From positions 308,017 to 372,016 of IMG/VR virus record IMGVR_UViG_3300042367_000228: a DNA stretch of 64,000 nt. One strand, 5' to 3'. Each line of letters begins with the position of its first letter. Position 1 is the stretch's first letter. The notes beneath the pieces are model-generated. The model was not told the DNA's origin. It searched no databases and saw nothing but the letters and a program-made list of their open reading frames with translations. This document shows, piece by piece, positions 12,275 to 64,000 of this stretch. Both the position numbers and the translations under genes were made by a program.

Positions 12275-12293
12275 TAGGCCCCGCTGTACATAT

Positions 12294-13181
12294 ATGAGAG
12301 CATACGAATTTATATTAAAAGAGCTATTAGAACCAAAGAAACCTGGATCAGCTGTTAAAAGTTCAACTGTATCCGTGTCTGGAGCACAAGGGAGTATTTC
12401 TAAAATCTCCCAACAAAAATTTACCACATCTAAAGGAAATGTAGTTAAGGTTTGGTTTAAGCCAACTCAAGCTGATGACGGTAATCCATCAGTTGAAATT
12501 ACGTTTTATGTTAACGACACTGTTTACGATAATTCATCAAGTGAAGGTAAGGATATTGCAAACGATTTTGAAATTTTATCAGGAGTTGGATATCTAGTTA
12601 ATAACACGCTTGACAGAAAGAAGCTTAATCATTGTACATTTTTAGCATACTCGAGCAACCGAGATACTCGAACTAAATTTAATATTCCACTTGAAAAATA
12701 CCTAGTTAAATTAAATCACTCGTTAACAACGTTTTATGATCAAATTGCAAATTTTAATCCTACTCCTGAACAACTATCTGCAGAGTTAGAAAGAAGGAAT
12801 GCATTACTAGCAAGACTTAAAAGACCTTTAGAAACGTCTGTTAATATGGTAGACCCTAACCTAACAAACGCATTATCTCAAATGCATGCGTTTATTAATC
12901 AACCATTTGACGAAACATCTTTAGAACGCTATTCTAAGTTACTTACTGCAATTGAACATTCTTCATCTCACTACGTATATAATAACACCGGTTTTCCTAA
13001 ATTAATTAACGATCTGCATGAATTTAAATTGATAGTAAGAAGTTATTCGAAAGACGGAGCTGAAATTACATCTAATCGTAGAGCGTCAGTATATTCAAAA
13101 TTAATACAAAAGTTCTTTTCAGATAAATGGGATATCAAAACACAAGGTGCTCACTTTACCTTAACCCGCAAACTATCTTAA
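12294..13181 (+). CDS. hypothetical protein
   Basis: start reassigned to MRAYEFILKE leader. Confidence 0.7.
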   Translation: MRAYEFILKELLEPKKPGSAVKSSTVSVSGAQGSISKISQQKFTTSKGNVVKVWFKPTQADDGNPSVEITFYVNDTVYDNSSSEGKDIANDFEILSGVGYLVNNTLDRKKLNHCTFLAYSSNRDTRTKFNIPLEKYLVKLNHSLTTFYDQIANFNPTPEQLSAELERRNALLARLKRPLETSVNMVDPNLTNALSQMHAFINQPFDETSLERYSKLLTAIEHSSSHYVYNNTGFPKLINDLHEFKLIVRSYSKDGAEITSNRRASVYSKLIQKFFSDKWDIKTQGAHFTLTRKLS

Positions 13182-13375
13182 TAGGCCCCGCTGTACACTC
13201 TGCTGTACACATATATTCGCACGAATATACTCACGCATTATATAATATACATATAATGCGCTCATATACATTGACAACACACACTTACACATATATACTA
13301 TAAGCATAACACGTTGTATGCAATAGGCCCCGCTGTACACATACACTAAATAATATTATCAATTAAGGAGTAACC

Positions 13376-13582
13376 ATGGAAACGATTTATACTGATAGAA
13401 GAATAGTAGAAACTGGATGTATGTTGTATATGAGAATAATTTCAATTGGTACTAGCATTACTGTCTATGCTTTTAAACATGACGAGTTCCGTTGTGATAT
13501 GGAAATCTTCACCGGCGACAACTACACAGGTAACTTAGAAGAATGGTTGTTACTTCCTGTTAGTACTGCTGCATCTTACTAA
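13376..13582 (+). CDS. hypothetical protein, similar to 5359-5559
   Basis: AAGGAG RBS; FK....RCDME.F. Confidence 0.65.
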   Translation: METIYTDRRIVETGCMLYMRIISIGTSITVYAFKHDEFRCDMEIFTGDNYTGNLEEWLLLPVSTAASY

Positions 13583-13633
13583 AGGCCCCGCTGTAGCATA
13601 TACACGAATAAATAATACTTGTGGAGATATACA

Positions 13634-14524
13634 ATGAGAGCAAGAGAATTTATTGTTGAAGCGGTTAAGCTATCTATTAAAAGTATAGTACCGCCAACAG
13701 ACATTAGTCAAGAAGACAAACAACAGGCATTTGCTAACCTTAGTCAAACTGAAATTGATCAATTAGATCAGCCTAGATACATTTCAAAAGAAATGTGGCC
13801 TCAGTTCCGCAAATGGCTGGTGCAACGCAGTTTAGCAAGTAACCCTACACTTGATCCAGTTCTTACTGCATATACCCCGGGTGAAACTCTTGCTCTCTTT
13901 AAACATCCTGAGATTGCTAAATGGCATCAAGAGATTGTTCATTACAAAGTTCCTCCTGAATACAAAATGGTAGCATTTGTTCCTTGTGGCAAAACTAAAC
14001 CCTGGGCCAATGCAGCACGCGGCATTTACAAAAGCTACAATCAAATCATAAAAGACAAAAGATATCCGGTATACTTTGTAACGGTATCTGAACCACTAGG
14101 AATTGTTCCAAGTAGTCTTTGGAGTGATTTCCCTCAATACGATAATCCGGGTTTATTTAAAGATGATACTCAGCAATCCGGAGGATTGTTTACAGCTGAT
14201 TGGAAACAGTACTATGGTACAGGTAAACAGAAAATGCCATTTGATCCGGCAGCCTATTCTCAGTGTATCCAATTTTTAGGTAATATCATTAATCAGTTTA
14301 TTGAAAACAATCCGCAAGTTCAATATGTTAGTTTTGTTGAAGATAAGATGTTTAAGGCTAGTTCTAACAATGTTGGAACACATAGTGCAATGCTCTCCCA
14401 TACCAATAAAATAGATCCTGCGCATCGTTACCTGAAACGAGCCGCACCACGTGAAGAACCATATAACTATGTGGATCAATCTCTTTCAACTCATTTCGAT
14501 AAACCGGAATCCGATCAACCATAA
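13634..14524 (+). CDS. DUF5591-like (ArcS archaeosine-synthase core-like) protein
   Basis: FVPCGKTKPW and VTVSEPLGIVP...FPQYDNPG match the PC..KP / SP.G.VP..YD.P pattern. Confidence 0.6.
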   Translation: MRAREFIVEAVKLSIKSIVPPTDISQEDKQQAFANLSQTEIDQLDQPRYISKEMWPQFRKWLVQRSLASNPTLDPVLTAYTPGETLALFKHPEIAKWHQEIVHYKVPPEYKMVAFVPCGKTKPWANAARGIYKSYNQIIKDKRYPVYFVTVSEPLGIVPSSLWSDFPQYDNPGLFKDDTQQSGGLFTADWKQYYGTGKQKMPFDPAAYSQCIQFLGNIINQFIENNPQVQYVSFVEDKMFKASSNNVGTHSAMLSHTNKIDPAHRYLKRAAPREEPYNYVDQSLSTHFDKPESDQP

Positions 14525-14540
14525 TTGGTAAAAATACCAC

Positions 14541-14569
14541 TTGACATTCTGCTGTAAACATTGTATAGT
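14541..14569 (+). promoter_or_regulatory. sigma70 promoter upstream of structured non-coding region
   Basis: TTGACA-17-TATAGT. Confidence 0.65.
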
Positions 14570-14575
14570 GTACGC

Positions 14576-15050
14576 ATAACTACAGCAGGTGTCGCGCAAA
14601 CTGTATTATCTATGCGCCCTATAACTGGACAGATGTATCACAGTGATGGAATTGTTGAACTGTAGCAACGACATAACCACCTACCCATTTGGATGAACAT
14701 GAGATGTACCTTTACAAAACTCATTACAGGTTATGGCCCCGCTGTACACGTAAGGTTAAAAGAAGGAGTAGCACTCCTACGACTGATTATATGGTTAGCA
14801 TTGTATAATCAGTCCGCCGTCATATATCACCAGGACGGAGCTCGAGGTACCGGATGACCGCCTCTGTAATGCTCTAATGCTAAGACAAAAAACGAACTCG
14901 ACAAATGTCTTTTTTGCCACATGGCCTAGTTGGGCCATTGTGACTATTTGAATCTGACAAAATGAAATAAAAGAAAAATAAAATTATAATAATTGATATG
15001 AGTGCCAACGAATATAAAATTATTATAATTTAGGACTATAGTCCTTTATA
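14576..15050 (+). ncRNA. candidate large structured ncRNA or leader
   Basis: ~480 nt without a convincing ORF, at least 5 stems incl. 11-bp (14781-14814) and 14-bp (14981-15031). Confidence 0.45.
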
Positions 15051-15065
15051 CCTATAGGAGAAATT

Positions 15066-15284
15066 ATGATTGAACTAGCACCACTATCTGATTATAAGAT
15101 GTCATACGACAAAGCCTGGTTGTATTGTGCTACCTTGACCTATAAGAACAAATACGATTGGCGTATTCCGACTGATGCCGAGTTTACATATAACGAAGAA
15201 ATTGATGAAGAATCTTTTGATCAATCAGACGAACCACATCATAGCCATTGGCGTGTTCAACCAGTGAGGACTAAAGATGCTTGA
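15066..15284 (+). CDS. DUF1566/Lcl-like mini protein
   Basis: MIELAP..YDKAWLYC..KYDWRIPT..E...PVRT. Confidence 0.85.
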   Translation: MIELAPLSDYKMSYDKAWLYCATLTYKNKYDWRIPTDAEFTYNEEIDEESFDQSDEPHHSHWRVQPVRTKDA

Positions 15285-15501
15285 GTTTGCCCCAATGCCG
15301 GCCGGCCGGTTCTCATTTGATGATGCCTGGTTATATTGTGCTACACTAACATATAATAACAATTATGACTGGCGCATACCAACTGAAGATGAATTTTGCA
15401 ACTACGAAGAAATTGATTGCGATGCGTTTGATCAGAATGATGAAGGTCTTAAGATAGCTAAAGTAACACATAAAATCTGTCCAGTGCGCACTGCTGATTA
15501 A
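15277..15501 (+). CDS. DUF1566/Lcl-like mini protein
   Basis: family motif; close paralog of 15066. Confidence 0.85.
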   Translation: MLEFAPMPAGRFSFDDAWLYCATLTYNNNYDWRIPTEDEFCNYEEIDCDAFDQNDEGLKIAKVTHKICPVRTAD

Positions 15502-15560
15502 AATACCATTTGTAAAGTCCTAAGTTTTGCGCTATAATAATGTTTTATGTAAGGAGCCAT

Positions 15561-15851
15561 ATGCTAGTAGCCACTTGTCAATCAAAATTTATAACGTATG
15601 CCGAAGCTGTTATGTATTGTTTGTTTTTAGATCACCAAGGAAAGAAAGGCTGGCGGTTGCCAACTTTACTTGAATGGGCAGATACTGCAGATGGCAGACT
15701 TACAACTAATACATGGTATCGAGAGAGTACGAATGAAGAACGAGCATTGCTTGCAAAACAATACAAACATACCCAGCAAGCTATAGAAGCTATGATTGAA
15801 CCATATGAAAATCGTAAAACAGGTATAGCAGTTGCAGTGAGGGATGAATGA
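15561..15851 (+). CDS. DUF1566/Lcl-like mini protein
   Basis: EAVMYC..GKKGWRLPT; start after AGGAG. Confidence 0.8.
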   Translation: MLVATCQSKFITYAEAVMYCLFLDHQGKKGWRLPTLLEWADTADGRLTTNTWYRESTNEERALLAKQYKHTQQAIEAMIEPYENRKTGIAVAVRDE

Positions 15852-16075
15852 TAGAAATATTAGCTAACCCACCTGGGATCAGTCGGAAGTTATATAATCG
15901 CGATGCAGCCTTTTTGTATATAATTACTCTAGTCCATAATGGACATGCAGACTGGCGATTTCCTACTCCAGACGAATGGGTTAACAGTCCTTTAGCGTAT
16001 ATGGCATGGCATCAAGGAAGAATTGATGACGATAGATTTTTCAGCTATCACATATACCCAGTGAGAGATATATGA
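15848..16075 (+). CDS. DUF1566/Lcl-like mini protein
   Basis: DWRFPT.DE...PVRD. Confidence 0.8.
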   Translation: MIEILANPPGISRKLYNRDAAFLYIITLVHNGHADWRFPTPDEWVNSPLAYMAWHQGRIDDDRFFSYHIYPVRDI

Positions 16076-16266
16076 TTAGATTTGCTAAACCATCCGGATG
16101 GTTAAACAACACAACTCCGGAAGCTGCTGACATGCACGTATTGTTTTATGAAGAAGACGGTTTAAAATACTGGAGGAGAGCAACTAACGAAGATTTTATT
16201 GACTTTGCAATACACGTTCCTGAATCATTGTTATCTAATACATGTATTCCGGTAAAGGATTTATGA
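16072..16266 (+). CDS. divergent DUF1566/Lcl-like mini protein
   Basis: EDG..YWR.AT.ED...PVKD. Confidence 0.65.
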   Translation: MIRFAKPSGWLNNTTPEAADMHVLFYEEDGLKYWRRATNEDFIDFAIHVPESLLSNTCIPVKDL

Positions 16267-16484
16267 GTATGCTTGAATTAGCCCCGCCATCAGAAAAAAT
16301 GACATATGACGAAGCAATTATGTATTGCTTTTGGTTAGAACACGATGGAAAGAAAGGCTGGAGAATGCCAACACATGAAGAATGGGCAAAGACTAAAGGC
16401 ATCATGGTGTACACTTGGAGACAGAATGATCACCGTACGATGATGGATACGATGCCTGTAGTACCGGTAAGAGGACAATTATGA
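16263..16484 (+). CDS. DUF1566/Lcl-like mini protein
   Basis: YDEAIMYC..GKKGWRMPT. Confidence 0.85.
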   Translation: MSMLELAPPSEKMTYDEAIMYCFWLEHDGKKGWRMPTHEEWAKTKGIMVYTWRQNDHRTMMDTMPVVPVRGQL

Positions 16485-16894
16485 AATGGTTTAACCGAAT
16501 ATTCAATCGCAATGTATATTTAAAATTTGACGTACCTACAAACCCTCCAGACAACAACAGAGTGCGTTATGTTGTAGGAGTCCCGGTTAATCACTATGAG
16601 AAAAAAATCATTGAAATCGTTTATACTGGAATACTATGTTCCAGTGATGATGAAGCAACGATGCATTTGTTTATGATGAGTAAGCATGATGGAAAGAGAG
16701 GATGGCGACTACCTACAATACACGAAGCTATATACTGTTCAGAGCTATCAGTAGTTAAGCATTTCTCTGATTGGAATTCACTTAGAGTTCCATTAGAATT
16801 AGTTTTAGTAAGAGATGTTACAGAAGATGAGTATAACTATTACAATGGACCTATAACACGTTTCTTTAAGCAGTTTGCGCAGTGGACTTATTGA
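16481..16894 (+). CDS. DUF1566/Lcl-like protein with N- and C-terminal extensions
   Basis: DEA.M...DGKRGWRLPT..E...LVRD. Confidence 0.75.
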   Translation: MKWFNRIFNRNVYLKFDVPTNPPDNNRVRYVVGVPVNHYEKKIIEIVYTGILCSSDDEATMHLFMMSKHDGKRGWRLPTIHEAIYCSELSVVKHFSDWNSLRVPLELVLVRDVTEDEYNYYNGPITRFFKQFAQWTY

Positions 16895-16925
16895 TAGCTA
16901 AATAGCAGACAATAAGGAGAGTGTT

Positions 16926-17909
16926 ATGTCAAAAGAAGAAGTAGGTACAGGTGTAAGCCAAGAAGAGTCAGTTACGCTTAATGGCGTAACAGTAACAGAA
17001 GAATCACATGCTGATGTATATGCTGAAGCACACGCAGGTGCAAGTGCAGAAGTAACTGATACAAGTGTATCGGCAGAAGCACACGCAGGTGCAAGTGTTG
17101 GTGCAGAAGCCGGTGCAAGTGTTACTTTAGGTGATGTTACATTAGAAGCTGAAGCACACGCTACTGCTGAAGTTGAAGCCACTGCTAACGCAAATGCAGG
17201 ATGGACAGGTACAGATGTAGTAGCTGAAGCAAGCGCAGGTGTTGAAGCGCGTGCAGAAATTGGTGCAAGTGCATCAGTTGGTAATGAAGATGTTGGCACA
17301 GTTAGTGTTTCGAGTGGTGCATACGCAGAAGCTAATGCAGGTGTTGAAGTAAGTGGTTCAGTTGGATTACACGGCGCACAAGGATATGCCGGAGCATCAG
17401 TTGGTGCAAGTGTTGGTGTAGAAGCTAATGCAGTAGCAGAAAGCCATGGTGTGTCTGCTGAAGCAGGTGCAGGTGTTAGCATTGGATTACAAGCAGGTGC
17501 AGAAGTTGGCGGTAAAGCTGAAGTACATGGCAACACTATTAGCATCGGTGTAGAAGGTGAACTAGAGTTATTAGCAGGTGTAGAACTTAATGCTGAATTA
17601 TCAGTTGATACTACTCCAGTTGTAGAATTAGCAGAACAAGTAGCCGATGACACTGCAAAGCTAGCAGAGCAAGCAGCGTTAGAAGCAGCCCGCATTGCTC
17701 AAGCAAAAGCAGAATACGCTGCTCGCGTTGCCCAAGAAGAAGCAGAACACGCAGCTAGAGAAGCACGAGAAGCATCAGAAAGAGCAGCTAGAGAAACACA
17801 AGCCGCAGCTGAAAGTGCAGCTAGAGAAGCAGATCGTTTAGCTAGAGAAGCAGCCAATCGTGCAGCAAATGAGATGAATAAAGCATTTAAAAAAGTAAAG
17901 TTCTGGTAA
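16926..17909 (+). CDS. Ala/Gly/Val/Glu-rich repeat protein with C-terminal coiled coil
   Basis: AEAHAGAS/GASVG repeats; AAREA heptads; AGGAG RBS; TAAATA upstream. Confidence 0.75.
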   Translation: MSKEEVGTGVSQEESVTLNGVTVTEESHADVYAEAHAGASAEVTDTSVSAEAHAGASVGAEAGASVTLGDVTLEAEAHATAEVEATANANAGWTGTDVVAEASAGVEARAEIGASASVGNEDVGTVSVSSGAYAEANAGVEVSGSVGLHGAQGYAGASVGASVGVEANAVAESHGVSAEAGAGVSIGLQAGAEVGGKAEVHGNTISIGVEGELELLAGVELNAELSVDTTPVVELAEQVADDTAKLAEQAALEAARIAQAKAEYAARVAQEEAEHAAREAREASERAARETQAAAESAAREADRLAREAANRAANEMNKAFKKVKFW

Positions 17910-18016
17910 AAGGCCCCGCTGTAACATGTATAGAGTAAACTTTCAGTTGACAAATTGTAAAGTTTACTTTATACTTTAATTTGTTTTAAGCAATCACACA
18001 GTAAAAAGGAGAAGTT

Positions 18017-18277: not shown

Positions 18278-18313
18278 TTTATAATAAACACTTAACAACC
18301 GCAGGAGCTATAA

Positions 18314-18535: not shown

Positions 18536-18549
18536 CAATGGAGGTAACT

Positions 18550-20614: not shown

Positions 20615-20858
20615 AAGAGATTTAGCTTACAATACACACTTAGAATACTTAGATTATTCTAACTATAAAATGGATTGGGACAGCGCATGGTTATACTGTG
20701 CTACCTGTACATATAAAGACATGTATGATTGGCGAATGCTTACTCCATATGAATTTCGTAATGATCTATACATACACAGCTGGCATGCCGCTTCACGAAA
20801 GGACAACTTTCCAGCATTTGTATTACCAGTTCGAGATAGAGGCCCCGCTGTAACATGA
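20607..20858 (+). CDS. DUF1566/Lcl-like mini protein
   Basis: WDSAWLYC..YDWRM.T..E...PVRD. Confidence 0.8.
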   Translation: MIRRDLAYNTHLEYLDYSNYKMDWDSAWLYCATCTYKDMYDWRMLTPYEFRNDLYIHSWHAASRKDNFPAFVLPVRDRGPAVT

Positions 20859-22806: not shown

Positions 22807-23069
22807 TTATTGATTATAAGATTGATCGTGCTCCGTCACGTATAGTAAACAACTATGAAGAGGCTTGGCTGTATTGCCTTACCTGTAATCATGATGGACA
22901 TAATGATTGGAGGTTACCTACTGTAGACGAATGGCAATATTCGTCTACAAACACAATGCCTTTAGAAGCTTATTATGAAAACAATTATTTCTTTAAAGTT
23001 GAACCGGCTATGCAGAATAAGGCAGTTCCAGTACGTGAAGTAAAATATTCTTTACAAATCAACAAATAA
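22803..23069 (+). CDS. DUF1566/Lcl-like mini protein
   Basis: YEEAWLYC..GHNDWRLPT. Confidence 0.85.
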   Translation: MIIDYKIDRAPSRIVNNYEEAWLYCLTCNHDGHNDWRLPTVDEWQYSSTNTMPLEAYYENNYFFKVEPAMQNKAVPVREVKYSLQINK

Positions 23070-23135
23070 TTGTTATACTATATTTTTTTAAACACTACAG
23101 CAAGCAAGGCCCCGCTGTACAAACAGGAGCATAAC

Positions 23136-25204: not shown

Positions 25205-25378
25205 ATGGACCAAATACAACAATTTGAAGTAGACCAAATCACAGCAAGTCTTGCAGCTCAAGGCGTTACTAATTTCACAATGAAACGTGGTAACAACTGT
25301 GTTTGGGTCTCGTACAACTCAATCGATTGTTATTATATTTTCAAAGATGAAAAACTTGTTAACATACAAGTAGATTAA
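25205..25378 (+). CDS. small hypothetical protein
   Basis: 57 aa; promoter cassette with GGAGC RBS. Confidence 0.6.
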   Translation: MDQIQQFEVDQITASLAAQGVTNFTMKRGNNCVWVSYNSIDCYYIFKDEKLVNIQVD

Positions 25379-26160
25379 ATATGTTTGCAGTTATCAAAAT
25401 GATATCGTTTCATATTTGTAGATCCTTCTTTTCCGCAATGAGGACATATTATTTTTGGTTTATGTTGTTTAGCATAACTCATTTTTGCTTTTGTGTCAGC
25501 CGACATGTTTTGTTTAGAAAGGCGCATTTTTTCTATAGAAGATGCTGAATGAGTTTTGCCTTTGTGTGCGGCACTAATTTTAGCCTTGTGATCGTCTGAT
25601 TTAGGTCTTCCTTTTCCTGCTATACTTAGTTTAGCTTTAGTTTCAGCTGAAAGAGGTTTACCTTTATTAGGTGACGTCCTGCCTTTAGAAGCGACGCTTA
25701 GTTTAGCTTTAGTTTCATCTGAGACAGGTTTACGCGGTTTAGTTGAAACTCTGCCTTTTCCTGCTATACTTAGTTTAGCTTTGGTTTCAGCTGAAAGAGG
25801 AATACCTTTTTTGCGTGACGGCCGGCCTTTACTAGCCTGACTTATCTTTTTTCGGGTTTCAGCTGATGGAGATCGTTCTCTCATTGCAGCTGCATGATTT
25901 CGTTTAAGCCAACTATATAACTTATTATTACGATATTTTCCAGATGACATTCGATGGGCTGCAAATAGCAATTTATGATTATCTGGATAGATTTTTACAA
26001 GCAGTTGATGTGCTACATAATGAGCTTCAGGAGTTAGACGTACTAAGTTACTTGGTTCATTAGAACCGCCCATACATCGCGGAATAATGTGATGCTTTTC
26101 TGTGTAATCTGCAATCATATCTTTTGCAGTGAGTTGTTCGTATATTTTTTGGTAATTCAT
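25375..26160 (-). CDS. HNH homing endonuclease with NUMOD3 repeats
   Basis: EKHHIIPRCMGG...NLV.LT...H..AH; SAETKAKLS repeats; C-terminal CPHC..HF.NC. Confidence 0.9.
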   Translation of the reverse strand: MNYQKIYEQLTAKDMIADYTEKHHIIPRCMGGSNEPSNLVRLTPEAHYVAHQLLVKIYPDNHKLLFAAHRMSSGKYRNNKLYSWLKRNHAAAMRERSPSAETRKKISQASKGRPSRKKGIPLSAETKAKLSIAGKGRVSTKPRKPVSDETKAKLSVASKGRTSPNKGKPLSAETKAKLSIAGKGRPKSDDHKAKISAAHKGKTHSASSIEKMRLSKQNMSADTKAKMSYAKQHKPKIICPHCGKEGSTNMKRYHFDNCKHI

Positions 26161-30478: not shown

Positions 30479-30677
30479 CATCACACACGAACGAGCTATC
30501 GCTAAACACGCCGGCGTACTACCATCACAACTTCGTAAGCTATCAACAGGCAAGTATTTCGTTGATATAAATGTTCCACTTGAACCATTGTGCGATGCAC
30601 GTTATGATTTCACAGTTGAGTTTTCGCAAATACTAATTGGAACTATTGCTGATGTAGGCCCCGCTGTTAATGCGTAG
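30471..30677 (+). CDS. hypothetical protein
   Basis: coupled ORF. Confidence 0.5.
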   Translation: MSNITHERAIAKHAGVLPSQLRKLSTGKYFVDINVPLEPLCDARYDFTVEFSQILIGTIADVGPAVNA

Positions 30678-32826: not shown

Positions 32827-32853
32827 GGCCCCGCTGTACGCGTAGGAGGAATT

Positions 32854-33102: not shown

Positions 33103-33168
33103 ACTTCTTTACACACCCCGCTGTAAATGCTATAATATGTTTTTACTTAATAAAGTTTGGAGCGCACA

Positions 33169-37549: not shown

Positions 37550-37595
37550 AGTTTTAAAACTAAATAGATTACAAGATTGTAACAGAATATTTAAT

Positions 37596-37667
37596 CCGTT
37601 CTTAGCATAAAGGTAATGCCAGGTCCTCATAAGACCCACTATCTCAGTTCGACCCTGAGGGAACGGA
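37596..37667 (+). tRNA. tRNA-CAT (Met or Ile2)
   Basis: cloverleaf: CCGTTCT/GGAACGG, loop CT-CAT-AA, CTCAG-TTCGACC-CTGAG; no encoded CCA. Confidence 0.85.
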
Positions 37668-37707
37668 TTAAATGTTTTGTAATAATACAGTTAACAACCA
37701 TTTTTAT

Positions 37708-37955: not shown

Positions 37956-38675
37956 TTAGGGTTTGCGTTTACAGTTATCAAAATGGTATCGTTTCATATT
38001 TCCACCTCTTCCTATTTTATTACAGTAAGGGCAGGTTAATTCAATTTTTTGTTTTCCCTTCATTGCGGCACTTATGTTAGCTTTATGATTAGCTGATTTA
38101 AGTATACCAGTTTTAGCAGAACTTATGTTAGATTTATGATTATCTGAAAGTTGTTTACCATTATGCGCAGACCGCATCTTAGATTTAGTTTCCTCTGAAT
38201 GTCTTTTTCCTGTATTAGTAACACTTAATTTAGCTCGTGTTTTGGATGAAACAACTCTTCCTGTATTTGTAGAACTTAGCTTAGTCCGCATACTATCTGG
38301 CATACTTTTACCTTTGTTAGGCGACGGCCTTCCTGTAAGAGATGCACTTATTTTAGCCTTATGTTCATCTGATATAGTTTTTCCTTTATTAGCAATACTG
38401 GCTGCTATAGAAAACTTTCGTCTAAGCCATCCATACAATTTATTTGTAATTCTACAATTACCCATCATATTAGCCGCATACACTAATTTATGATTATGTG
38501 GGTAGATTTTTACAAGTAGCTGATGTGCTACATAATGAGCCTCGGGAGTTAATAATACTAAGTTACTTGGATTGTTAGAACCGCCCATACAACGAGGAAT
38601 TATGTGATGCTTTTCTGTATAGTCTGCAATCATATCTTTTGCAGTTAATTGTTCATATATCTTTTGATAGTTCAT
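37956..38675 (-). CDS. HNH homing endonuclease with NUMOD3 repeats
   Basis: N-terminal ~60 aa nearly identical to 25375-26160; S.E.K.K.S repeats; CPYC..HFDNC. Confidence 0.9.
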   Translation of the reverse strand: MNYQKIYEQLTAKDMIADYTEKHHIIPRCMGGSNNPSNLVLLTPEAHYVAHQLLVKIYPHNHKLVYAANMMGNCRITNKLYGWLRRKFSIAASIANKGKTISDEHKAKISASLTGRPSPNKGKSMPDSMRTKLSSTNTGRVVSSKTRAKLSVTNTGKRHSEETKSKMRSAHNGKQLSDNHKSNISSAKTGILKSANHKANISAAMKGKQKIELTCPYCNKIGRGGNMKRYHFDNCKRKP

Positions 38676-39839: not shown

Positions 39840-39916
39840 CTGCCTATAGCTCAAATGGACAGAGCGTTCCCCTCCTAAGGGAAAGGCTATGGGTTCAAGT
39901 CCCGTTAGGCAGGCCA
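39840..39916 (+). tRNA. tRNA-Arg(CCT)
   Basis: CTGCCTA/TAGGCAG, CT-CCT-AA loop, GGTTCAAGTCC, CCA. Confidence 0.92.
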
Positions 39917-52820: not shown

Positions 52821-53136
52821 TAAGACAAATAGGCCCCGCTGTACATATATAGAGATTGATGCTGTACGATGAGAGGCTTTGAATTTTCTTTTGAGATTTG
52901 GTAAACAATGAGAAGATTGATGGGAGGCCTATGGGATTTGTGGGGACAAATGGTAAACAATGTGAAAAATACGGTTTTGAGTGGGGTATTCATTGTAGCT
53001 ACCCCTGCCTCCACCCAGCCAATCAAAACTTCATTAAGTATATAGACAATGGTAAAATAGTGCCAAAATAGTGCTTTACTTTGCCAAAACAGTGTGTTAT
53101 ACTGTGCGCATACTTTAATTTAATAGGAGCGCAACA

Positions 53137-54410: not shown

Positions 54411-54699
54411 TTAAAAACCGGACCCTGTACTCTGGTACTAGGTCGGTCTATAAATGCAAAAAACGGCAAAAACATGGGGCTACAGACCGCTAACGACGCG
54501 GGCCAAAAACCAAAGATGAGTCTTAATTATAGGTGCCTGGATACTAAAAAGGCCCCGCTGTACATATCGGACTATGCGCATTATATATGAATATAGTATA
54601 ACACATATACGCGTGGAAGTAAAGAGTTAATTAGTTCTTTACAAACCATTACTATAGTGTTATACTATACACATATTAACAACTAACGGGGTAAGCAGT

Positions 54700-56759: not shown

Positions 56760-56826
56760 GGCAAAAGGCCCCGCTGTACTATATGTGTATGGCGGGGCGG
56801 TTACTTACTTTATTAGGAGCAATAAG

Positions 56827-57760: not shown

Positions 57761-57761
57761 G

Positions 57762-58173: not shown

Positions 58174-58272
58174 AAACTGCTTGCTAACTTGTACATAGTT
58201 TGCTATAATATGTGCAAGTTAGCAATGTTGCTAACTGTTACAAAACTTTATATAACTTTCGGAGCGTATCGT

Positions 58273-58677
58273 ATGTCAAAATTACTAAAAAACACTGTTA
58301 ACGCAATTAACGCAATAGTAAACAGCAAAACCGAGGAGTTCAAGCTTCCAGCTTATGTGGTGCTTGCTGATGTTAAACGACGCAACGCGGAAAACGAATG
58401 CTTGTACAACGAACAGCAGTTACTTGCTGGGGAAGCGTTGTTAGCAGGTATTGAGGATGTGTACTTATGCAGTAGAGTTTTTTTGAACTACAGACAACGC
58501 TTTATTGCAGTTAAAGTCAACGCACCGAGCTTTAAGGACAAAGTAAGTTTACGCGCTGCGAAACTAGATGCGTGGTGCGATGCAAACGGCATTGTTAAGG
58601 AGTATACGAGACACGGACACATTGTATACAGAGCTAACACGGACGCACTGGATAACATAAGCACAGTGGCTGCATAG
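58273..58677 (+). CDS. hypothetical protein
   Basis: promoter + hairpin leader; GGAGCG RBS. Confidence 0.65.
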   Translation: MSKLLKNTVNAINAIVNSKTEEFKLPAYVVLADVKRRNAENECLYNEQQLLAGEALLAGIEDVYLCSRVFLNYRQRFIAVKVNAPSFKDKVSLRAAKLDAWCDANGIVKEYTRHGHIVYRANTDALDNISTVAA

Positions 58678-58942
58678 GCCCCGCTGTACATATACACACG
58701 CGCAGGCTACACGGTAAACAAAGTGCTTGCAATGCGCGTGTGTATAGCGTATAATATGTTTTTACATTAAAGCAAAACGGAGCGCAAATGCAATACAATA
58801 ACACTTACCCACAACGCCCATATTGCACTACGTGCGGGGACTTAGAGGTACTATACAACATGGAAACAGATGAGCTTGAACCATGTTGGGATTGTGAGCA
58901 AACTGAATCAAATGACTTTAACGATAAAGCGGAGCGTGTATA

Positions 58943-59209
58943 ATGGCAACAGGTATCATGAACAACGAAGTTAAACAAAAACAAGCAGCCGAACTAGCTC
59001 AACGCGTAGCAATGTTCTTAGCAACCGGCGGCGCAATTAAAACGACTAAAACGGGACGCAGAGGACGCACAACTGTTTCACAAGTCCACACTCCCCGAGT
59101 TGTGGTAGTAGAGAAACAACGATACACATGGGACGAGGCTACACAGGATTTGGCATCAATGGGCTTGTTGGACAAACAGGTAAAAGCTGCTATCAAAGCA
59201 CGCCGATAG
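58943..59209 (+). CDS. hypothetical protein
   Basis: GGAGCG RBS; A.FLA.GG.I motif. Confidence 0.65.
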   Translation: MATGIMNNEVKQKQAAELAQRVAMFLATGGAIKTTKTGRRGRTTVSQVHTPRVVVVEKQRYTWDEATQDLASMGLLDKQVKAAIKARR

Positions 59210-59218
59210 GAGAGCAAC

Positions 59219-59584
59219 ATGACTATACAGACGCAGTTGAGAAACCATATTAAGTTTCTAAGTACCTTAAATGAGAACTTAGATGCAATCCACAACTCCA
59301 TACAAGAGAACAATGAAGTGTTCCGGTTAGTATCGAGTGGCTTCCAAAGACTCCCTGCTAAGGATCGCAAGACAGCTTCGAAAGTAATGTTAGATCAAAT
59401 ATCAATACACACTAACTGCCAGCAAATGGATGTAGTCACAATAGTCGAGCAACTCCATTATACAAGTTTAATCGGTACAGTGAGTACAACGGAAAGTGAT
59501 GTGTATGACTTAGTGTACTGCATTGATATTCCAACAATGATCAATCGTATGAAACATCAACACGCCAGTTTAATGACAATGTAG
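59219..59584 (+). CDS. hypothetical protein
   Basis: GGAG RBS; terminator follows. Confidence 0.6.
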   Translation: MTIQTQLRNHIKFLSTLNENLDAIHNSIQENNEVFRLVSSGFQRLPAKDRKTASKVMLDQISIHTNCQQMDVVTIVEQLHYTSLIGTVSTTESDVYDLVYCIDIPTMINRMKHQHASLMTM

Positions 59585-59595
59585 AAACTCCGTTG

Positions 59596-59624
59596 AACGG
59601 GCGCAGTGATGCGCTCGTTTTTTT
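59596..59624 (+). terminator. intrinsic terminator
   Basis: AACGGGCGCA/TGCGCTCGTT stem + T-tract. Confidence 0.8.
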
Positions 59625-59676
59625 GAACAGTATTATAACCGGCATTCCGGATAGACCCCGCTGTATATGTGTGTAC

Positions 59677-59755
59677 CGGCATTCCGGTCCGTGGTTGAAT
59701 CAGTTAATCGGCATTCCGGTCCGTGGTTGAATCAGTTAATCGGCATTCCGGTCCA
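59677..59755 (+). repeat. 32-bp tandem repeat (2 copies + partial)
   Basis: CGGCATTCCGGTCCGTGGTTGAATCAGTTAAT at 59677 and 59709, partial at 59741. Confidence 0.9.
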
Positions 59756-59897
59756 GGGACAATTCCATATGCATCACCGGCATATCGCATACGTGATCAC
59801 ACGGATATAAACTTGTAAAATAAATTTGCATTGTTTGTTGTTTACTGTATAATAAGCATTGTAGCAATATTGCTACGTTAACTTAAAAGTGTATATT

Positions 59898-60248
59898 ATG
59901 CAAACATTAAACACAGCAACAAAAAACGCAATTAACACAACAACAGCTAACACAAGCAAAGTGCCCGGAATGTATCCGAGCAACACGAGTATACTGGCAC
60001 TATTGGCGGACGCTGGGTTTGCCGAAGAGTGGAGCACAACGACACATCCGACGCACGTGGTATTAAAGATAGCAGCGATATACAACGAGCATAAGGCAGC
60101 AGTTGAGGACATTTGGAATAACGATGCTGCAATGGATGCGTGTATAGCGGAAGTTGAGGAGCATGCGGACTTAGTGGACTACATAAACTACACGGCACTG
60201 CAGGACGCAGTGTTTGTGTACGATTGCTTATGCTGCAGCGGACTATAG
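59898..60248 (+). CDS. hypothetical protein
   Basis: promoter + hairpin; SD-less leader. Confidence 0.65.
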   Translation: MQTLNTATKNAINTTTANTSKVPGMYPSNTSILALLADAGFAEEWSTTTHPTHVVLKIAAIYNEHKAAVEDIWNNDAAMDACIAEVEEHADLVDYINYTALQDAVFVYDCLCCSGL

Positions 60249-60309
60249 AGTAACACGAAGCACACGGACGTGCAAACAAACTAACTTAATGATAATTTGG
60301 AGCGTAAAG

Positions 60310-60483
60310 ATGAAAACGGTACAAGAATATACAGCAGTATTGAGCGCAAGACTAATTGATACACGAAGCCGTAGACAAGCCGAACGCACACGGGATGCCA
60401 TACTACGCGAACGCCGCGAGAATAAAGAAACAATGAAGTATGCGGACTTTGTGGCGCTTAGAGCTAGCGCGTTAGTAGACTAA
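60310..60483 (+). CDS. small basic protein
   Basis: GGAGCG RBS. Confidence 0.55.
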   Translation: MKTVQEYTAVLSARLIDTRSRRQAERTRDAILRERRENKETMKYADFVALRASALVD

Positions 60484-60497
60484 TTGGAGAGCGAACA

Positions 60498-60704
60498 ATG
60501 ACTACGCTATTTGTTTTGAAAGTTATGATGTTTATTGGCGCACAGGAAATTGAGAACACATTCATATATCCAACTGAAGCGGAGTGCCAACAACACCGGG
60601 CGATGGAAGTACAGCTACTAGACAGACTGAACGAAACGGTACTAACAGGGTACGCGACACGATGCGATGTGGCAAAGGACAGTGATATGGTTAACACGAA
60701 GTAG
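60498..60704 (+). CDS. hypothetical protein
   Basis: GGAG RBS; Y.T.AEC....C motif. Confidence 0.6.
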   Translation: MTTLFVLKVMMFIGAQEIENTFIYPTEAECQQHRAMEVQLLDRLNETVLTGYATRCDVAKDSDMVNTK

Positions 60705-60717
60705 TGATTTGTGAACT

Positions 60718-60743
60718 AACGGGCACTTCGGTGCTCGTTTTTT
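60718..60743 (+). terminator. intrinsic terminator
   Basis: AACGGGCAC-TTCG-GTGCTCGTT + T-tract. Confidence 0.85.
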
Positions 60744-60962
60744 ATGGCATGTCATTATTCGACATATCGGTCTCGGGACACAATCGATATATCGGTACAG
60801 ACATAGCATCGGCATTCCGGTTTCTCGATATATCGGTCCTTCGGCGGCTGCGGATCCATGGATATAAACTTGTAAAATAAATTTGCATTTTGTTTTTACT
60901 ATGCTATACTATGTGCAAGTTAGCAATAACGCTAACTGTTAACTTAACTATAGTACACTACA

Positions 60963-61148
60963 ATGCAAAATACTAAACAACAACAAGTTACACGTTTTTT
61001 AAACAAACAAGCGCAAGCACACAAACAACAATACAGCACTGCGGCACAAACGGGCTTTATGGATCACGTAGTAACAGCTTTGGAGTTTATGATTGTTGCG
61101 GTTCCGTTTGCTATTGCAATAGTTGGATTTTGCGGTGCATTTAATTAA
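60963..61148 (+). CDS. small membrane protein
   Basis: promoter + hairpin; C-terminal TM helix. Confidence 0.6.
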   Translation: MQNTKQQQVTRFLNKQAQAHKQQYSTAAQTGFMDHVVTALEFMIVAVPFAIAIVGFCGAFN

Positions 61149-61667
61149 TAAAAAACGCTTGCAATTTAAAATAACAAGCGTATAATATAAAGCGTGTTAA
61201 GCAATAACGTTTAACACGCGCTTTTTAACAATTTAACTATAGTGTGTATATTATGCAAACAATAACAGCTACGTGCAAACAAGCACAAAAAAACAGTAAT
61301 AACGCAATGCAACAAGCAATGCTGCAAGTGCTTAATGCTTATGTTGCAACAAACAAAGTAACAGCAACAAAGCAAAAACACGCTAAAAAAGTAACTTACA
61401 CAGCAAATAAAAACTATGTTTTATGCTATGTAACACGCGCTTTTGTTGCAAATATTTGTTTTGCAAGTGCTAACAGTGTAAGTTATACGCTAACACTTGC
61501 GCAAAATGCTAACTTAACGCAAGCAAATATTAACAATGCTTACATTAAGTGTGTAACTAAAAAAACGTTTAACAAGTATGTTAACAAAGTTAAAAACACT
61601 GTAATTAACTAAGCAATAAATAATGCAAGCACTTTTTACAGTGCTTGCATTTTAACACTACAAATAG
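61136..61667. other. GR-free island (no GA, GG, TC, CC)
   Basis: line-by-line inspection of ~530 bp. Confidence 0.9.
61253..61612 (+). CDS. 119-aa protein lacking D, E, G, P and W, inside GR-free island
   Basis: promoter 61159-61186, hairpin leader, stem-loop after stop. Confidence 0.6.
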   Translation: MQTITATCKQAQKNSNNAMQQAMLQVLNAYVATNKVTATKQKHAKKVTYTANKNYVLCYVTRAFVANICFASANSVSYTLTLAQNANLTQANINNAYIKCVTKKTFNKYVNKVKNTVIN

Positions 61668-62789
61668 GAGTAACGACAATGGCAAGACGATCAGACCGAG
61701 CAACTACAGCAAACAAAAAAGCAGTTCGTCGAGTACTAAGACGTAACAAGAAGTAGTAAATAGGCCCCGCTGTAGCATTACATGATATTGAAACGTATGG
61801 CACACATTGACCCCGCTGTACGGATACCTTAACTAACATTTCTATCTACCATACCTAATACACACGCTCCACTTAACCCTGTATGTGCCGCATAACACAT
61901 ATGGGGTTTCCTTTTGATCGATCCATCAAACATAACGGCATTCCGGTCATTGGAGACTCTTGGAGGTTTGGTATTCGATAAACTAACTATACTTGACTAT
62001 TCGAAATGCCATATGCTATAATACCCCGCTGTAACATAGCACGTTTTAGTATATGCGTGTAACACTTACACAATATTAAAACAATATATGTAAAATTTAC
62101 GTTTTAACGCATGTACACAGCACGTTTATACACTAAGCAATACAGCTATAGCACTATACACAATAAAACAGCTTACACGCAAATTTTGCGCTAGTTAGTA
62201 TGGATTGTATGATATTCCATATAGAGGAATCACCATGCTATATCAATACCCCGCTGTAAGGTTACACGGTTAAACACATACTTGCATTTTATACGTTTAC
62301 TTGCTATAATATATTTTTTTAACTTACTTACTATAACAACAATGCTAACACAAAAATTATATATGTATAACATGTCCAGCGCAACCAAATTGCGTGTAAT
62401 GATGACACACGGTGATGCAGCCGCTAGACTAATCACAAAGGTTAAACGAGTTAAAGGATATCAGGCCCCGCTGTAGGATCGTGTGGGCAGGCTAGGATTG
62501 AACAGGCATCTGGTTAGGTGCCTGATACACACAAACTATGCAACCGGAATGCCGATAGCTTTTATTATATCTAAACCGATATGTCGATGAAGGTACAGTG
62601 GAACGGATTGGTAGGTGCATGGATGGTATTAGAATGGAACGATTTGACATCGAATGGTTGACATCGGTACCGGCCGTTATGGTGTATACGATTACGGTAC
62701 GAATTAAGTGTGTGTTTTATTATGCACTGTTTTGGTGCTATAAAACAAAATAAAAAAGTGCAACCCTTTCGAGTTGCACTCATTTGGTG

Positions 62790-62975
62790 CTATCTGTAAA
62801 TTAAAGGCATTGATAACACGCTAATACGTTCGCCATTACGCATTAAAAGAATGCGCCCACCTGTTTTGTCATTGTCTAACACTCGCACAATATTACGCGC
62901 GTCAATGTCTACAATCTCTTGGCACTCATTTGGTGCAATGGTGTCAAATAACCCGTTATTTAATAATACTTTCAT
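62790..62975 (-). CDS. hypothetical protein
   Basis: AAGGA RBS on - strand. Confidence 0.55.
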   Translation of the reverse strand: MKVLLNNGLFDTIAPNECQEIVDIDARNIVRVLDNDKTGGRILLMRNGERISVLSMPLIYR

Positions 62976-63041
62976 GTTTTAAATTCCTTAAATGAGTTAA
63001 AAAAGTGCATCATCTTATTGATGATGCACTATTGTGAAGCG

Positions 63042-63473
63042 TTAGCCGAAAATACCGTCTTTTTCTACAATATCCAAGTCTACCAATTCGCCTTCACTTT
63101 GTGCAATCGCTGATTGACTATGTGAGTTAATGAATGTATTTAGTGCATTCAAGTGATTTTCAGTAAACCCGTTGATTCTTTTTTGTGCATCGCAAATATC
63201 TTTGTATTCGTCATAGTTATTGCGTAAAAATAGTGCCGCTGTCAATTCAGATACAGCACGGTTTAATTGCACCATGAACACTTCAGAATGTGCATGAACA
63301 CCACTTTCTTTCACCTTATTTAAGTGCAACCAACGTGCTTTACAAGTTAAACCGTCGCCCGAAAAACGTGCTTTGTAGCCTAGACGATGATGCAAGCTAA
63401 CACCCACACCTTGCACTACTTTTGCGCCATTGCCGAAAGTGTTTGTTGTTGTTTGTTGTGCAAAATTTGACAT
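63042..63473 (-). CDS. hypothetical protein
   Basis: 143 aa; AGGTG RBS; divergent from GR-free region. Confidence 0.65.
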   Translation of the reverse strand: MSNFAQQTTTNTFGNGAKVVQGVGVSLHHRLGYKARFSGDGLTCKARWLHLNKVKESGVHAHSEVFMVQLNRAVSELTAALFLRNNYDEYKDICDAQKRINGFTENHLNALNTFINSHSQSAIAQSEGELVDLDIVEKDGIFG

Positions 63474-63481
63474 AATATCAC

Positions 63482-64000
63482 CTATTTAAAGTATGTTATG
63501 CGCTTTTTTTGTGCATACTTAATGCACAATAAATGCGCGTTAAAAGTAAAGTAAAAATAAATTGTTAAAAAGCTAACTTAAAAATGCGTTTTTTTATGCG
63601 CTTGTTTTTTTAAGTTGTGCATAGTTTACAGCATATAAAAAAAAAGTAAAATTTAATTGCAATTTATTTTTACAATTTAGCACTAAAAATGCGCATTTTT
63701 AAAAAAAGTGTATAAAAAACAATAACTTATAATTTAAAAATAATTTTATTTAATGCGCATTTTTTGCGCATAATGCGCATTTATAGCGTTTTTAATGCGC
63801 ATTTTTAGTGCTATATATTGCAAGCGCATAGCAAGCGCATAGCAAGCGCATAGCACAGGCCCCGCTGTTAGCGCATAGCAAGCGCATAGCATAGCAAGCG
63901 CATAGCATAGCAAGCGCATAGCATAGCAAGCGCATAGCATAGCAAGCGCATAGCATAGCAAGCGCATAGCATAGCAAGCGCATAGCATAGCAAGCGCATA
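63482..64000. other. GR-free non-coding island broken only by the GGCCCC motif
   Basis: no GA/GG/TC/CC in 63482-63857 and 63864-64000. Confidence 0.9.
63820..64000. repeat. GCAAGCGCATA / 16-bp tandem repeat running off the window end
   Basis: 3 x 11-bp units, then 8 copies at 16-bp period (GCAAGCGCATA-GCATA). Confidence 0.95.

Follow-up and report, generated by a model that had tools for sequence, protein, structure and literature searches.

A strictly oriented, promoter-like motif array in a T4-like jumbo phage from lake metagenomes

The window analyzed here (64,000 nt, referred to throughout as the window) is the last 64 kb of a 372-kb T4-like jumbo phage from lake metagenomes. Nearly all genes between 11 and 62.5 kb of the window are on the + strand, and this 52-kb block of small rightward genes contains 22 copies of a short GC-rich motif, interspersed with many strong sigma70-type promoters and with hairpin terminators. 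At its right-hand end the block meets convergent - strand genes, followed by an AT-rich, origin-like region with arrays of a 16-bp tandem repeat next to primase/helicase genes.

Table 1. Motif copies in the window and their surroundings.
Position	Strand	Form	Context
12277..12288	+	TAATA-GGCCCCGCTGTA; 12/17 identical to the T7 consensus	2 nt after a stop, 5 nt before the ATG of a strain-variable cassette gene
13184..13195	+		2 nt after a stop; right-hand boundary of the motif-to-motif insertion 12277-13184
13326..13337	+		About 20 nt downstream of the start expected from sigma70 promoter 13271-13299; 38 nt before the ATG; conserved in related loci L080 and L109
13584..13595	+		1 nt after a stop; a strain-variable gene is inserted 5 nt after it
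14735..14746	+	T at -1	Conserved in related loci L080, L109 and L121
17912..17923	+		2 nt after a stop, 24 nt before sigma70 promoter 17947-17975; boundary between a variable segment (left) and a conserved one (right)
20841..20852	+		Inside an ORF end (GPAVT*); next ATG 2 nt downstream
23108..23119	+		In the leader downstream of sigma70 promoter 23051-23079; 16 nt before the ATG of a conserved 195-aa gene
30657..30668	+	GTT variant	Inside an ORF end (GPAVNA*)
32827..32838	+		Abuts a stop codon; 15 nt before the ATG, with an SD in between
33114..33125	+	CA head	In the spacer of a TTTACA-N17-TATAAT promoter
52832..52843	+		In a long non-coding stretch
54551..54562	+		75 nt before sigma70 promoter 54638-54666
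56767..56778	+		7 nt after a stop; the only copy that forms a hairpin, with downstream GGCGGGGC
58677..58688	+		Overlaps a TAG stop; 38 nt before sigma70 promoter 58727-58755
59654..59665	+	GA head	About 30 nt after an intrinsic terminator
61763..61774	+		First copy of the five-copy cluster at the end of the + block
61809..61820	+	GA head	Cluster copy, 34 nt after the previous copy
62022..62033	+	TA head	Cluster copy, abutting the -10 of promoter 61993-62022
62247..62258	+	TA head	Cluster copy, 24 nt before a TTGCAT-N17-TATAAT promoter
62464..62475	+		Last cluster copy, before the convergent - strand genes
63858..63869	+	GTT variant	Between arrays of the 16-bp tandem repeat in the AT-rich, origin-like region next to primase/helicase genes

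A sequence-only reading of the window had described a strictly polar dispersed motif with 15 exact copies and 7 one- or two-base variants, and our analysis confirms this observation. We counted 22 exact matches to CCCCGCTGT, all on the + strand and none on the - strand, while 100 dinucleotide shuffles gave a mean of 0.09 and a maximum of 1. Fifteen of the 22 are exact GGCCCCGCTGTA, and the other seven (30657, 33114, 59654, 61809, 62022, 62247, 63858) differ by one or two bases. There are no degenerate copies: for the 13-mer, 22 copies have 0-2 mismatches on the + strand and 0 on the - strand, and the counts fall to chance level at higher divergence (4 versus 1 at 3 mismatches, 26 versus 24 at 4 mismatches). 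The claim that copies usually lie right after stop codons can be quantified: 11 of 22 lie at a + strand ORF end against 2.8 expected (0 of 5000 random placements reached 11), and 6 of 22 lie within +-2 nt against 0.57 expected. The two copies inside ORF ends, the copy in a promoter spacer, and the copy within the tandem repeat were also as described. Two points required correction. First, the repeat described as terminal is the end of the contig and not necessarily of the genome, as sister contigs read through it into replication genes. Second, the strict polarity is confounded with gene direction in the + strand block. An assembly artefact had been named as a possible refutation; we found the region in independent runs from 2016, 2020, 2024, and 2025, and the motif is not an assembly artefact.

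To define the element, we built sequence logos from 48 and then 184 non-redundant copies collected across a large clade of such phages. Both show information only from -3 to +14 of the 12-mer, giving a self-contained element A-W-A-G-R-CCCCGCTGT-A of about 17 bp with no partner element and no fixed -10 or -35. Information content is about 0 from +15 to +62, which does not fit a T4 MotA-box middle promoter, with its activator box at -30 and a sigma70 -10 element 11-13 bp downstream. Folding energies do not differ from those of motif-less gene ends and only 1 of 22 copies forms a hairpin, so the element does not have the GC-rich hairpin and U tract of an intrinsic terminator. The lack of a conserved partner sequence or excess structure likewise does not fit an integron attC site, whose imperfect inverted repeats fold into a bulged hairpin.

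Across the clade, all copies share one orientation in 90 of 90 multi-copy loci. In many lineages, clusters of 2-5 copies sit in the divergent gap between a leftward block and a rightward block of small genes, at the head of the latter. In 19 independent clusters, downstream genes lie on the motif strand in 17 (p=7e-4), but upstream genes do so in only 12 (p=0.36). The sequence-only reading had proposed, by analogy with Chi and KOPS, a directional protein-loading signal for packaging, ejection, recombination, segregation, or modification nucleation. This interpretation is partly supported: the element is asymmetric, invariant, unstructured, and strictly oriented, consistent with a directional signal read by a protein, but neither the specific analogy to Chi or KOPS nor the readings as a packaging, ejection, segregation, or modification signal are supported. 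Chi and KOPS are also short, asymmetric, polar, and over-represented, and the motif is GC-rich in an AT-rich genome, with copies densest near the repeat region at the contig end. However, Chi and KOPS are genome-wide, tolerated in coding DNA, and oriented relative to replication or DNA ends, while this motif is confined to 12.3-63.9 kb of the window, is absent from about 68 kb sampled elsewhere in the genome, sits at gene boundaries rather than being scattered through coding DNA, and is oriented relative to downstream genes. In other lineages the clusters lie at the opposite end of the block, and two 372-kb assemblies start at different points and appear circular or permuted, so that a fixed physical end is not established. 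In a scan of 185,579 bacterial species genomes, performed with the extended 17-mer because the 9-mer core was too short, we found no enrichment, only single hits in 36 unrelated genomes, consistent with chance by our own rough estimate. We therefore consider a signal read by a DNA translocase (RecBCD/AddAB, FtsK, terminase, or the ejection machinery) very unlikely.

The placement of individual copies suggests two other readings, both of which we regard as unlikely. Copies overlap sigma70 promoter elements (33114, 62022) or lie about 20 nt downstream of promoter starts (13326, 23108), the common order is stop - motif - sigma70 promoter - gene, and five copies sit at the end of the + block. A phage DNA-binding protein might thus use the motif as an operator, roadblock, or insulator to shut off or insulate the early cassettes: copies after stop codons would stop read-through, copies at about +20 of leaders would block fresh initiation, and copies inside promoters would occlude them. 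Yet clusters at divergent junctions point away from the upstream genes and have nothing to block, real hairpin terminators are also present, one only 30 nt upstream of a copy, and this reading gives no explanation for the T7-like register described below or for the stop codon falling at -17..-15. Alternatively, the motif could be read in the transcript or the transcribing complex, either as an intercistronic RNA-processing or stability site recognized by an RNA-binding protein, like the yeast mitochondrial dodecamer or chloroplast PPR footprints, or as an ops/nut-like element on the non-template strand that loads an elongation factor onto host RNA polymerase. The motif is always on the sense strand of a co-directional block, hugs stop codons at cistron boundaries, occurs within leaders 15-38 nt upstream of start codons, and is a 12-nt linear element without structure, with the same length and polarity as the RfaH ops element. 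However, it matches ops at only about 5 of 12 positions, its copy number is much higher, and some copies lie upstream of any plausible start. Most copies are transcribed in principle, but the copies at 62022 and L113:12371 are problematic here: at 62022 the predicted sigma70 start falls inside the motif, so the RNA would carry only part of it, and in the related locus L113 the first copy lies about 23 nt from the start of a divergent gene, with no room for an upstream promoter. Clusters at divergent junctions would similarly need unseen upstream promoters. We found no NusG-like or RNA-binding candidate among the proteins screened, and complementarity to rRNA is at chance level.

Comparison between strains showed that three breakpoints coincide with motif copies. 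The segment 12277-13184 is an exact motif-to-motif insertion, 13601-14532 is inserted 5 nt after a copy, and the 17912 copy separates a variable from a conserved segment. In the L029 group of loci, two direct copies bracket an MjaI-type restriction endonuclease gene on the opposite strand. Direct orientation is what deletion/insertion recombination requires, and the genome is rich in homing endonucleases, raising the possibility that the motif is a target for a site-specific recombinase, homing-type nuclease, or nickase that mobilizes cassettes in an integron-like manner or leaves strand-specific nicks as in T5-type phages. We consider this doubtful, as the motif shows no inverted-repeat or attC-like structure, no recombinase was found, and most copies are conserved at orthologous positions without rearrangement. 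Repeated regulatory elements are already known to mediate such shuffling as a by-product, as in the PeSL cassettes of T4-type phages (PMC4122927). Like PeSL and PmSL cassettes (PMC2839356, PMC4122927), the motif is a repeated module at gene boundaries in hyperplastic regions full of small ORFans, co-oriented with transcription, associated with insertions, deletions, and swaps, and linked to internal-protein-like loci; it also occupies the slot held by the stem-loop in PeSL cassettes. PeSLs, however, consist of a hairpin plus a sigma70 (or MotA-box) promoter and are only loosely conserved, while this element is an invariant, unstructured 13-17-mer that is neither, and sits beside separate, variably spaced sigma70 promoters and hairpins.

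We next compared the element with promoters of T7-group single-subunit RNA polymerases, which are also contiguous elements of about 17 bp present in many nearly identical copies on the transcribed strand, in short intergenic gaps and sometimes in tandem. The element aligns to the T7 consensus in one register only (14/23 identities versus 2-8 for all other shifts), and the copies at 12277 and 13184 are 12/17 identical to TAATACGACTCACTATA. Identity to T7 (12) and K11 (11) lies within the range seen among genuine T7-group promoters (T7-SP6 10, T7-K11 13), although when corrected for registers, strands, and three reference promoters the sequence resemblance alone is moderate, with P of about 0.007-0.04. 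T7-group promoters have an AT-rich stretch at -17..-13, lineage-specific positions -12..-8 in a GC-rich middle that differs between phages, and C-R-C-T-R-T-A before the start, and the element likewise has a GC-rich core. In this register the A-W-A flank falls on T7's A-T-A at -15..-13, and positions -7..-1 read CGCTGTA, identical to the T7-group CACTATA at 5 of 7 positions with two A-to-G transitions at -6 and -3. Stop codons of upstream genes overlap the AT-rich 5' end, as in T7, where 7 of 17 promoters use their own TAA at -17..-15 as the upstream stop, and in K11, where 7 of 13 abut or overlap the stop; the copies at 12277, 13184, and 17912 carry TAA in the same register. Positions -12/-11, part of the specificity region of T7-type promoters, are uniform within a genome (57/60 loci; 0.93 versus 0.53 expected) but differ between genomes (GG versus TA/AA), which implies a co-evolving phage-encoded reader, although this homogeneity would fit any phage-encoded binder. 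T7-group promoters initiate with GGG; by sequence alone, the base after the element in the window's lineage is C in 56% and A in 25% of copies, while in TA-head lineages it is G in 61% of copies and GGG is the commonest triplet.

Taken together, these data suggest that the motif is a phage-specific promoter, with start at or just after the final A, from which a phage-specified transcription enzyme would transcribe rightward into the block of small accessory or "takeover" genes, in parallel with the host sigma70-type promoters there. We assign this reading a probability of about 0.5. Its most specific form is that a T7-type polymerase encoded elsewhere in the genome reads the element, a promoter type not reported in giant T4-like phages; the fallback is a phage sigma-like factor redirecting the host polymerase. 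In this view, the marking of junctions at which gene cassettes are gained and lost is a side effect of the repeated element. Our analysis establishes the sequence anatomy, polarity, placement, conservation, and co-variation by genome of the element, while initiation of transcripts at the motif and the identity of its reader are inferred from sequence alone. Several findings weigh against the proposal. Searches by tblastn with T7, K11, and SP6 polymerases detected no cognate polymerase, and Pfam and PHROGs searches returned no RNA_pol or sigma hit, in the roughly 132 kb (36%) of the genome sampled; no such polymerase was found in about 4 Mb of related loci either. The genome is that of a 372-kb T4-like myovirus rather than a 40-kb podovirus, encoding UvsW/X/Y and gp32-, gp41-, and gp61-like proteins, and T4-like jumbo phages are reported to encode sigma factors but no polymerase of their own (PMC7824862). 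Proximity to the next start codon is not enriched in the window, and the abundant sigma70-type promoters mean that a second promoter class is not obviously needed. The array also differs from T7-group promoters in that copies are restricted to one accessory-gene block and do not drive the replication or structural genes.

Additional features are consistent with a promoter. Leaders would be short: the SD starts 5-8 nt after the motif in several copies, and two genes start 2-5 nt after it without an SD. The T4 late promoter TATAAATA, read by gp55, is likewise a single, compact, -35-less element read by a phage-specified factor, as we infer for this motif, and it occurs upstream of three + strand genes in this genome; its sequence is entirely different, while the motif is GC-rich, longer, and marks a different gene class. 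One copy precedes an AT-rich, repeat-rich, origin-like region beside primase/helicase genes, and the primary origin of T7 has the same layout of tandem promoters followed by an AT-rich region. Finally, tandem copies of the motif 31-57 nt apart parallel T7 phi1.1A/phi1.1B, which are 75 nt apart.

Our data show that the core CCCCGCTGT occurs 22 times in the 64-kb window, always on the + strand, whereas dinucleotide-preserving shuffles of the window give 0.09 copies on average. Fifteen copies are exact GGCCCCGCTGTA and seven differ at one or two flanking positions, as the sequence-only reading had reported, and that observation holds: it is real and far from chance. We found no halo of decayed copies: for the 13-mer AGGCCCCGCTGTA, 22 copies have 0-2 mismatches on the + strand and none on the - strand, and both strands are at chance level at 3-4 mismatches. 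The sequence is present in many independent lake-water runs from 2016 to 2025, which rules out an assembly artefact. A literature search for the sequence string in both orientations returned only unrelated primers.

The window forms the last 64 kb of a 372,016-bp IMG/VR contig (IMGVR_UViG_3300042367_000228). Sister contigs of about 372 kb start at other points, so the contig end, which falls inside a 16-bp tandem repeat, is an assembly break and not a proven genome end. Beyond the repeat lie genes for a UvsW-like helicase, a primase, a DnaB-type helicase, UvsX, UvsY, a gp32-like SSB, a terminase split by a homing endonuclease, and the tail sheath and tube, all on the opposite strand, and to the left of the window are virion and accessory genes. 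The T4 late-promoter sequence TATAAATA occurs three times on the + strand; it lies 19 and 34 nt before two of the three + strand genes embedded in the leftward block, and upstream of the third, 169 nt before the nearest ORF candidate. The genome is therefore a T4-like jumbo myovirus with no close cultured relative. It also carries many free-standing homing endonucleases (HNH-NUMOD3, GIY-YIG-NUMOD3), in addition to a LAGLIDADG domain inside the UvsW-like helicase. The region of the assembly break is AT-rich and contains repeated ATGCGCAT-type palindromic boxes, at least eight copies of the 16-bp tandem repeat (GCATAGCAAGCGCATA) and then AACAACATTTTGTTGT inverted repeats next to primase/helicase genes, and it looks like a replication origin.

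Positions 11-62.5 kb of the window form a block of about 140 small, mostly ORFan genes, almost all on the + strand, with many textbook sigma70-type promoters (TTGACA/TTTACA-N17-TATAAT), several hairpin terminators and two tRNA genes. All motif copies lie in this block or just beyond it, and the strict polarity noted from the sequence alone is therefore confounded with gene direction. The motif is absent from the leftward genes at 1-10.6 kb, from 10 kb to the left of the window, from about 31 kb to the right, and from a 27-kb sample at contig positions 223-250 kb. The extended form GGCCCCGCTGTACAYAT hits this contig only inside the window.

To define the element, we built a logo from 48 and then 184 non-redundant copies. 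It reads A(-3) W(-2) A(-1) [G/T][G/A] CCCCGCTGT [A/G/T, never C], followed by weak preferences: CAYATA in this lineage and G-rich/GGTCT in others. Nothing else is conserved within 40-60 nt on either side; there is no second element, which rules out a MotA-box-type or any other bipartite promoter. Folding energies around the motif do not differ from those at motif-less gene ends, and its pairing state is inconsistent, so that the element is neither a hairpin terminator nor an attC-like site. We also compared it by eye with sigma54, ECF, sigma32 and LexA half-sites and saw no consistent match, and its complementarity to rRNA, which would be expected of a tether for termination-reinitiation, is at chance level.

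We next examined how the copies are placed relative to genes. Eleven of the 22 sit at a + ORF end (2.8 expected; 0 of 5000 random placements reached 11), and six sit within ±2 nt of one (0.57 expected), while proximity to the next start codon is not enriched (4 vs 2.4, p = 0.22). Where an ORF runs through the motif, it always does so in the frame GGC CCC GCT GTN and stops 0-9 nt later. A common layout is a stop codon, the motif, 12 to 75 nt, a sigma70 promoter and a gene, but two conserved genes instead have a sigma70 promoter, about 20 nt, the motif and then the gene, and one copy lies in a promoter spacer and one abuts a -10 element. Spacing to host promoters is not fixed, so the motif is an independent module.

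Pattern scans of IMG/VR show that the motif is a trait of a large clade of related phage contigs at 36-49 % GC, which share proteins with the window at 23-99 % identity, along with hallmark accessory genes. In 90 AT-rich loci with at least two copies, none has mixed orientation. Many lineages have 2-5 copies, 31-57 nt apart, in the non-coding gap between a leftward gene block and a rightward block of small genes, all pointing rightward. In 19 independent clusters, the downstream genes lie on the motif's strand in 17 (p = 7e-4), but the upstream genes do so in only 12 (p = 0.36). The motif thus points at the genes it precedes, a start-of-unit logic that argues against a terminator or a 3'-end processing signal. 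In at least eight other lineages, a conserved non-coding box, GAGTAACCATTTWAACTATGCC, lies 30-100 nt downstream of the last motif copy of the cluster; the ORFs starting at its ATG are not conserved, and the box is absent from the window.

We also compared the element with promoters of T7-type phages. The annotated T7 record shows that seven of its 17 phage promoters start exactly 15 nt after the last base of the preceding stop codon, because the promoter's own TAA (-17..-15) is that stop, and K11 promoters abut or overlap the upstream stop in 7 of 13 cases. Stop-codon hugging is therefore a hallmark of T7-type promoters in compact genomes. The motif aligns with the T7 consensus in one register only (14/23 identities; every other shift gives 2-8). 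In that register, the window copies at 12277 and 13184 read TAATAGGCCCCGCTGTA against TAATACGACTCACTATA, which is 12/17 identical, with the upstream TAA stop at -17..-15, and the conserved A-W-A flank falls on T7's A-T-A at -15..-13. The differences fall at -12, -10 and -8, the specificity region, and as A-to-G transitions at -6 and -3. Identity to T7 (12) and K11 (11) is within the range seen among genuine T7-group promoters (T7-SP6 10, T7-K11 13, K11-SP6 14). However, corrected for all registers, both strands and three references, the resemblance of the conserved 13-15-mer alone has P of about 0.007 against shuffles and 0.03-0.04 against random window k-mers, so that the case rests on the combination with placement, polarity and the co-variation described next.

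Positions 1-2 of the 12-mer (-12/-11 in the T7 register) are GG (or GA) in some genomes and TA (or AA) in others, but are uniform within a genome. Of 60 loci, 57 use a single class, and within-locus agreement is 0.93, against 0.53 expected and a maximum of 0.64 in 2000 permutations. The TA class is followed by G at +1 in 61 % of copies. Variation between genomes but not within them, at the positions that set specificity in T7-type promoters, is what a co-evolving, phage-encoded reader would produce, and it argues against a conserved host factor. Consistent with this, the extended motif gave only 36 single hits in bacterial genomes, in line with chance by our rough estimate, and the AT-rich ones are ordinary coding sequence, leading us to reject a host genomic repeat or prophage as the source of the extended motif.

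These data suggest that the motif is a phage-specific promoter serving the hypervariable small-gene block of a clade of freshwater T4-like jumbo phages, with an architecture that resembles T7-group promoters; we put the probability of this reading at about 0.5. The recurrence, orientation, placement, conservation and co-variation of the element are observed directly, whereas transcription from it and the nature of its reader are inferred from sequence alone. The Chi/KOPS-type signal proposed in the sequence-only reading is not supported. An operator or roadblock, an RNA-level or elongation-complex signal, and a recombination or nick site each explain part of the data and remain possible. The single candidate RNA run, which is of unknown type and contig-level, showed strain variants and not transcript ends.

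To look for a reader, we walked along the genome and fetched loci around paralogous homing endonucleases. No T7-, K11- or SP6-like polymerase, sigma factor, NusG paralog or recombinase was found in the roughly 132 kb (36 %) of this genome reached in this way or in roughly 4 Mb of related loci. Within the window, about 45 proteins were screened by Pfam/PHROGs, two conserved motif-preceded genes were compared with PDB sequences, and one of these, plus the largest unknown protein, was compared with the ESM Atlas; none of these searches returned an informative match. A survey of 224 jumbo phages reports that T4-like ('group 2') jumbo phages encode sigma factors and gp33 but no polymerase of their own (PMC7824862), making a phage sigma-like factor the main alternative reader. 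Two proteins show weak matches (E of 1e-5 and 3e-4) to the C-terminal, host-transcription-shutoff part of the T7 gp0.7-type family (phrog_15752), but this is only a hint.

That a T7-type polymerase reads the motif is a doubtful but not excluded sub-claim. In this view, a widespread clade of freshwater T4-like jumbo myoviruses would carry a T7-type single-subunit RNA polymerase, either virion-delivered or early-expressed, and would use T7-like promoters solely to drive a hypervariable block of small host-takeover and anti-defence genes, while host polymerase with T4-type factors expresses the rest. Such a hybrid T4/T7 transcription programme has not been reported in any jumbo phage; it would overturn the current view that T4-like jumbo phages encode no polymerase of their own, and would add a new orthogonal polymerase/promoter pair with natural specificity variants (GG vs TA heads). 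If the motif is a promoter of any type, it gives a ready-made map of a dedicated transcription programme for the most variable and least understood part of giant phage genomes, the hundreds of small ORFan genes thought to take over the host and defeat its defences. It also defines a sequence tag (A-NN-CCCCGCTGT-D) that finds this block and this clade in metagenomes.

Whatever its reader, the element marks the junctions where gene cassettes are exchanged, which helps explain how these regions evolve. In strain and lineage comparisons, one gene is an exact motif-to-motif insertion, a second is inserted 5 nt after a copy, between it and the next sigma70 promoter, and the copy at 17912 separates a variable left side from a conserved right side. 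In another lineage, two direct copies 721 bp apart bracket an MjaI-type restriction endonuclease gene on the opposite strand. This parallels the PeSL/PmSL cassettes of T4-type phages, in which repeated regulatory elements mediate modular shuffling (PMC4122927), and we regard it as a consequence of having many identical oriented copies, not as the primary function. The two cassette genes inserted after motif copies, each of about 295 aa, are unrelated apart from a shared N-terminal peptide (MRAYEFILKE and MRAREFIVE) and have no nuclease hits, which speaks against their acting as a motif-targeting nuclease. The peptide resembles the T4 internal-protein capsid-targeting peptide (MKTYQEFIAE), and as both genes are strain-variable insertions directly after motif copies, they may be injected internal proteins or anti-defence cassettes.

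Locations of features in the window and in other contigs (L numbers denote contig loci outside the window)
Location	Strand	Feature
window 475, 7148, 9073	+	TATAAATA, the T4 late-promoter sequence
window 9099-9821; L275:20294-20647		weak matches to the T7 gp0.7-type family
window 12277-13184		motif-to-motif insertion
window 12294-13181 and 13634-14524 (also the gene starting about 56818)		genes with the internal-protein-like N-terminal peptide
window 13601-14532		gene inserted 5 nt after a motif copy
window 17912		motif copy between variable and conserved segments
window 25375-26160 (-), 37956-38675 (-); L277:8135-8914; L275:6235-6999; L288:16680-17330; L122:562-3144		homing endonucleases, including the one that splits the large terminase gene and the LAGLIDADG domain
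window 37595-37668, 39840-39916		tRNA-Met(CAT) and tRNA-Arg(CCT) genes
window 46.5-52.6 kb		tandem array of paralogous genes
window 59640-59760, 61937, 62545 (inverted)		second repeated box, CGGCATTCCGG(T)
window 61680-61758		basic ORF
window 63480-64000, continuing in L122/L123		AT-rich, origin-like region
L029:10269-11001 (and L056, L066, L067, L072, L085, L088)	opposite to motif	MjaI-family restriction endonuclease gene between motif copies
L216:11297, L233, L025:8019, L055:13856, L172, L195, L243, L260, L264		GAGTAACCATTTWAACTATGCC box
L392		83-kb relative of contig region about 250-260 kb

The window and other contigs hold further features. A tandem array of about 25 paralogous genes of 65-90 aa has overlapping stop/start codons and no motif copies, and its paralogs are also abundant in the sister contigs L080, L109 and L121. 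The second repeated box includes a perfect 32-bp tandem repeat (2.4 copies) right after the motif copy at 59654. Immediately before the five-copy motif cluster lies a 25-aa, highly basic ORF (MARRSDRATTANKKAVRRVLRRNKK) with a good SD. In L392, accessory genes include a ferredoxin-dependent bilin reductase, a RimK-like ligase, CsgF/CsgG, a FecR-domain protein, a CHASE2-adenylate cyclase and an RNA ligase, and the bilin reductase may hint at the host group.
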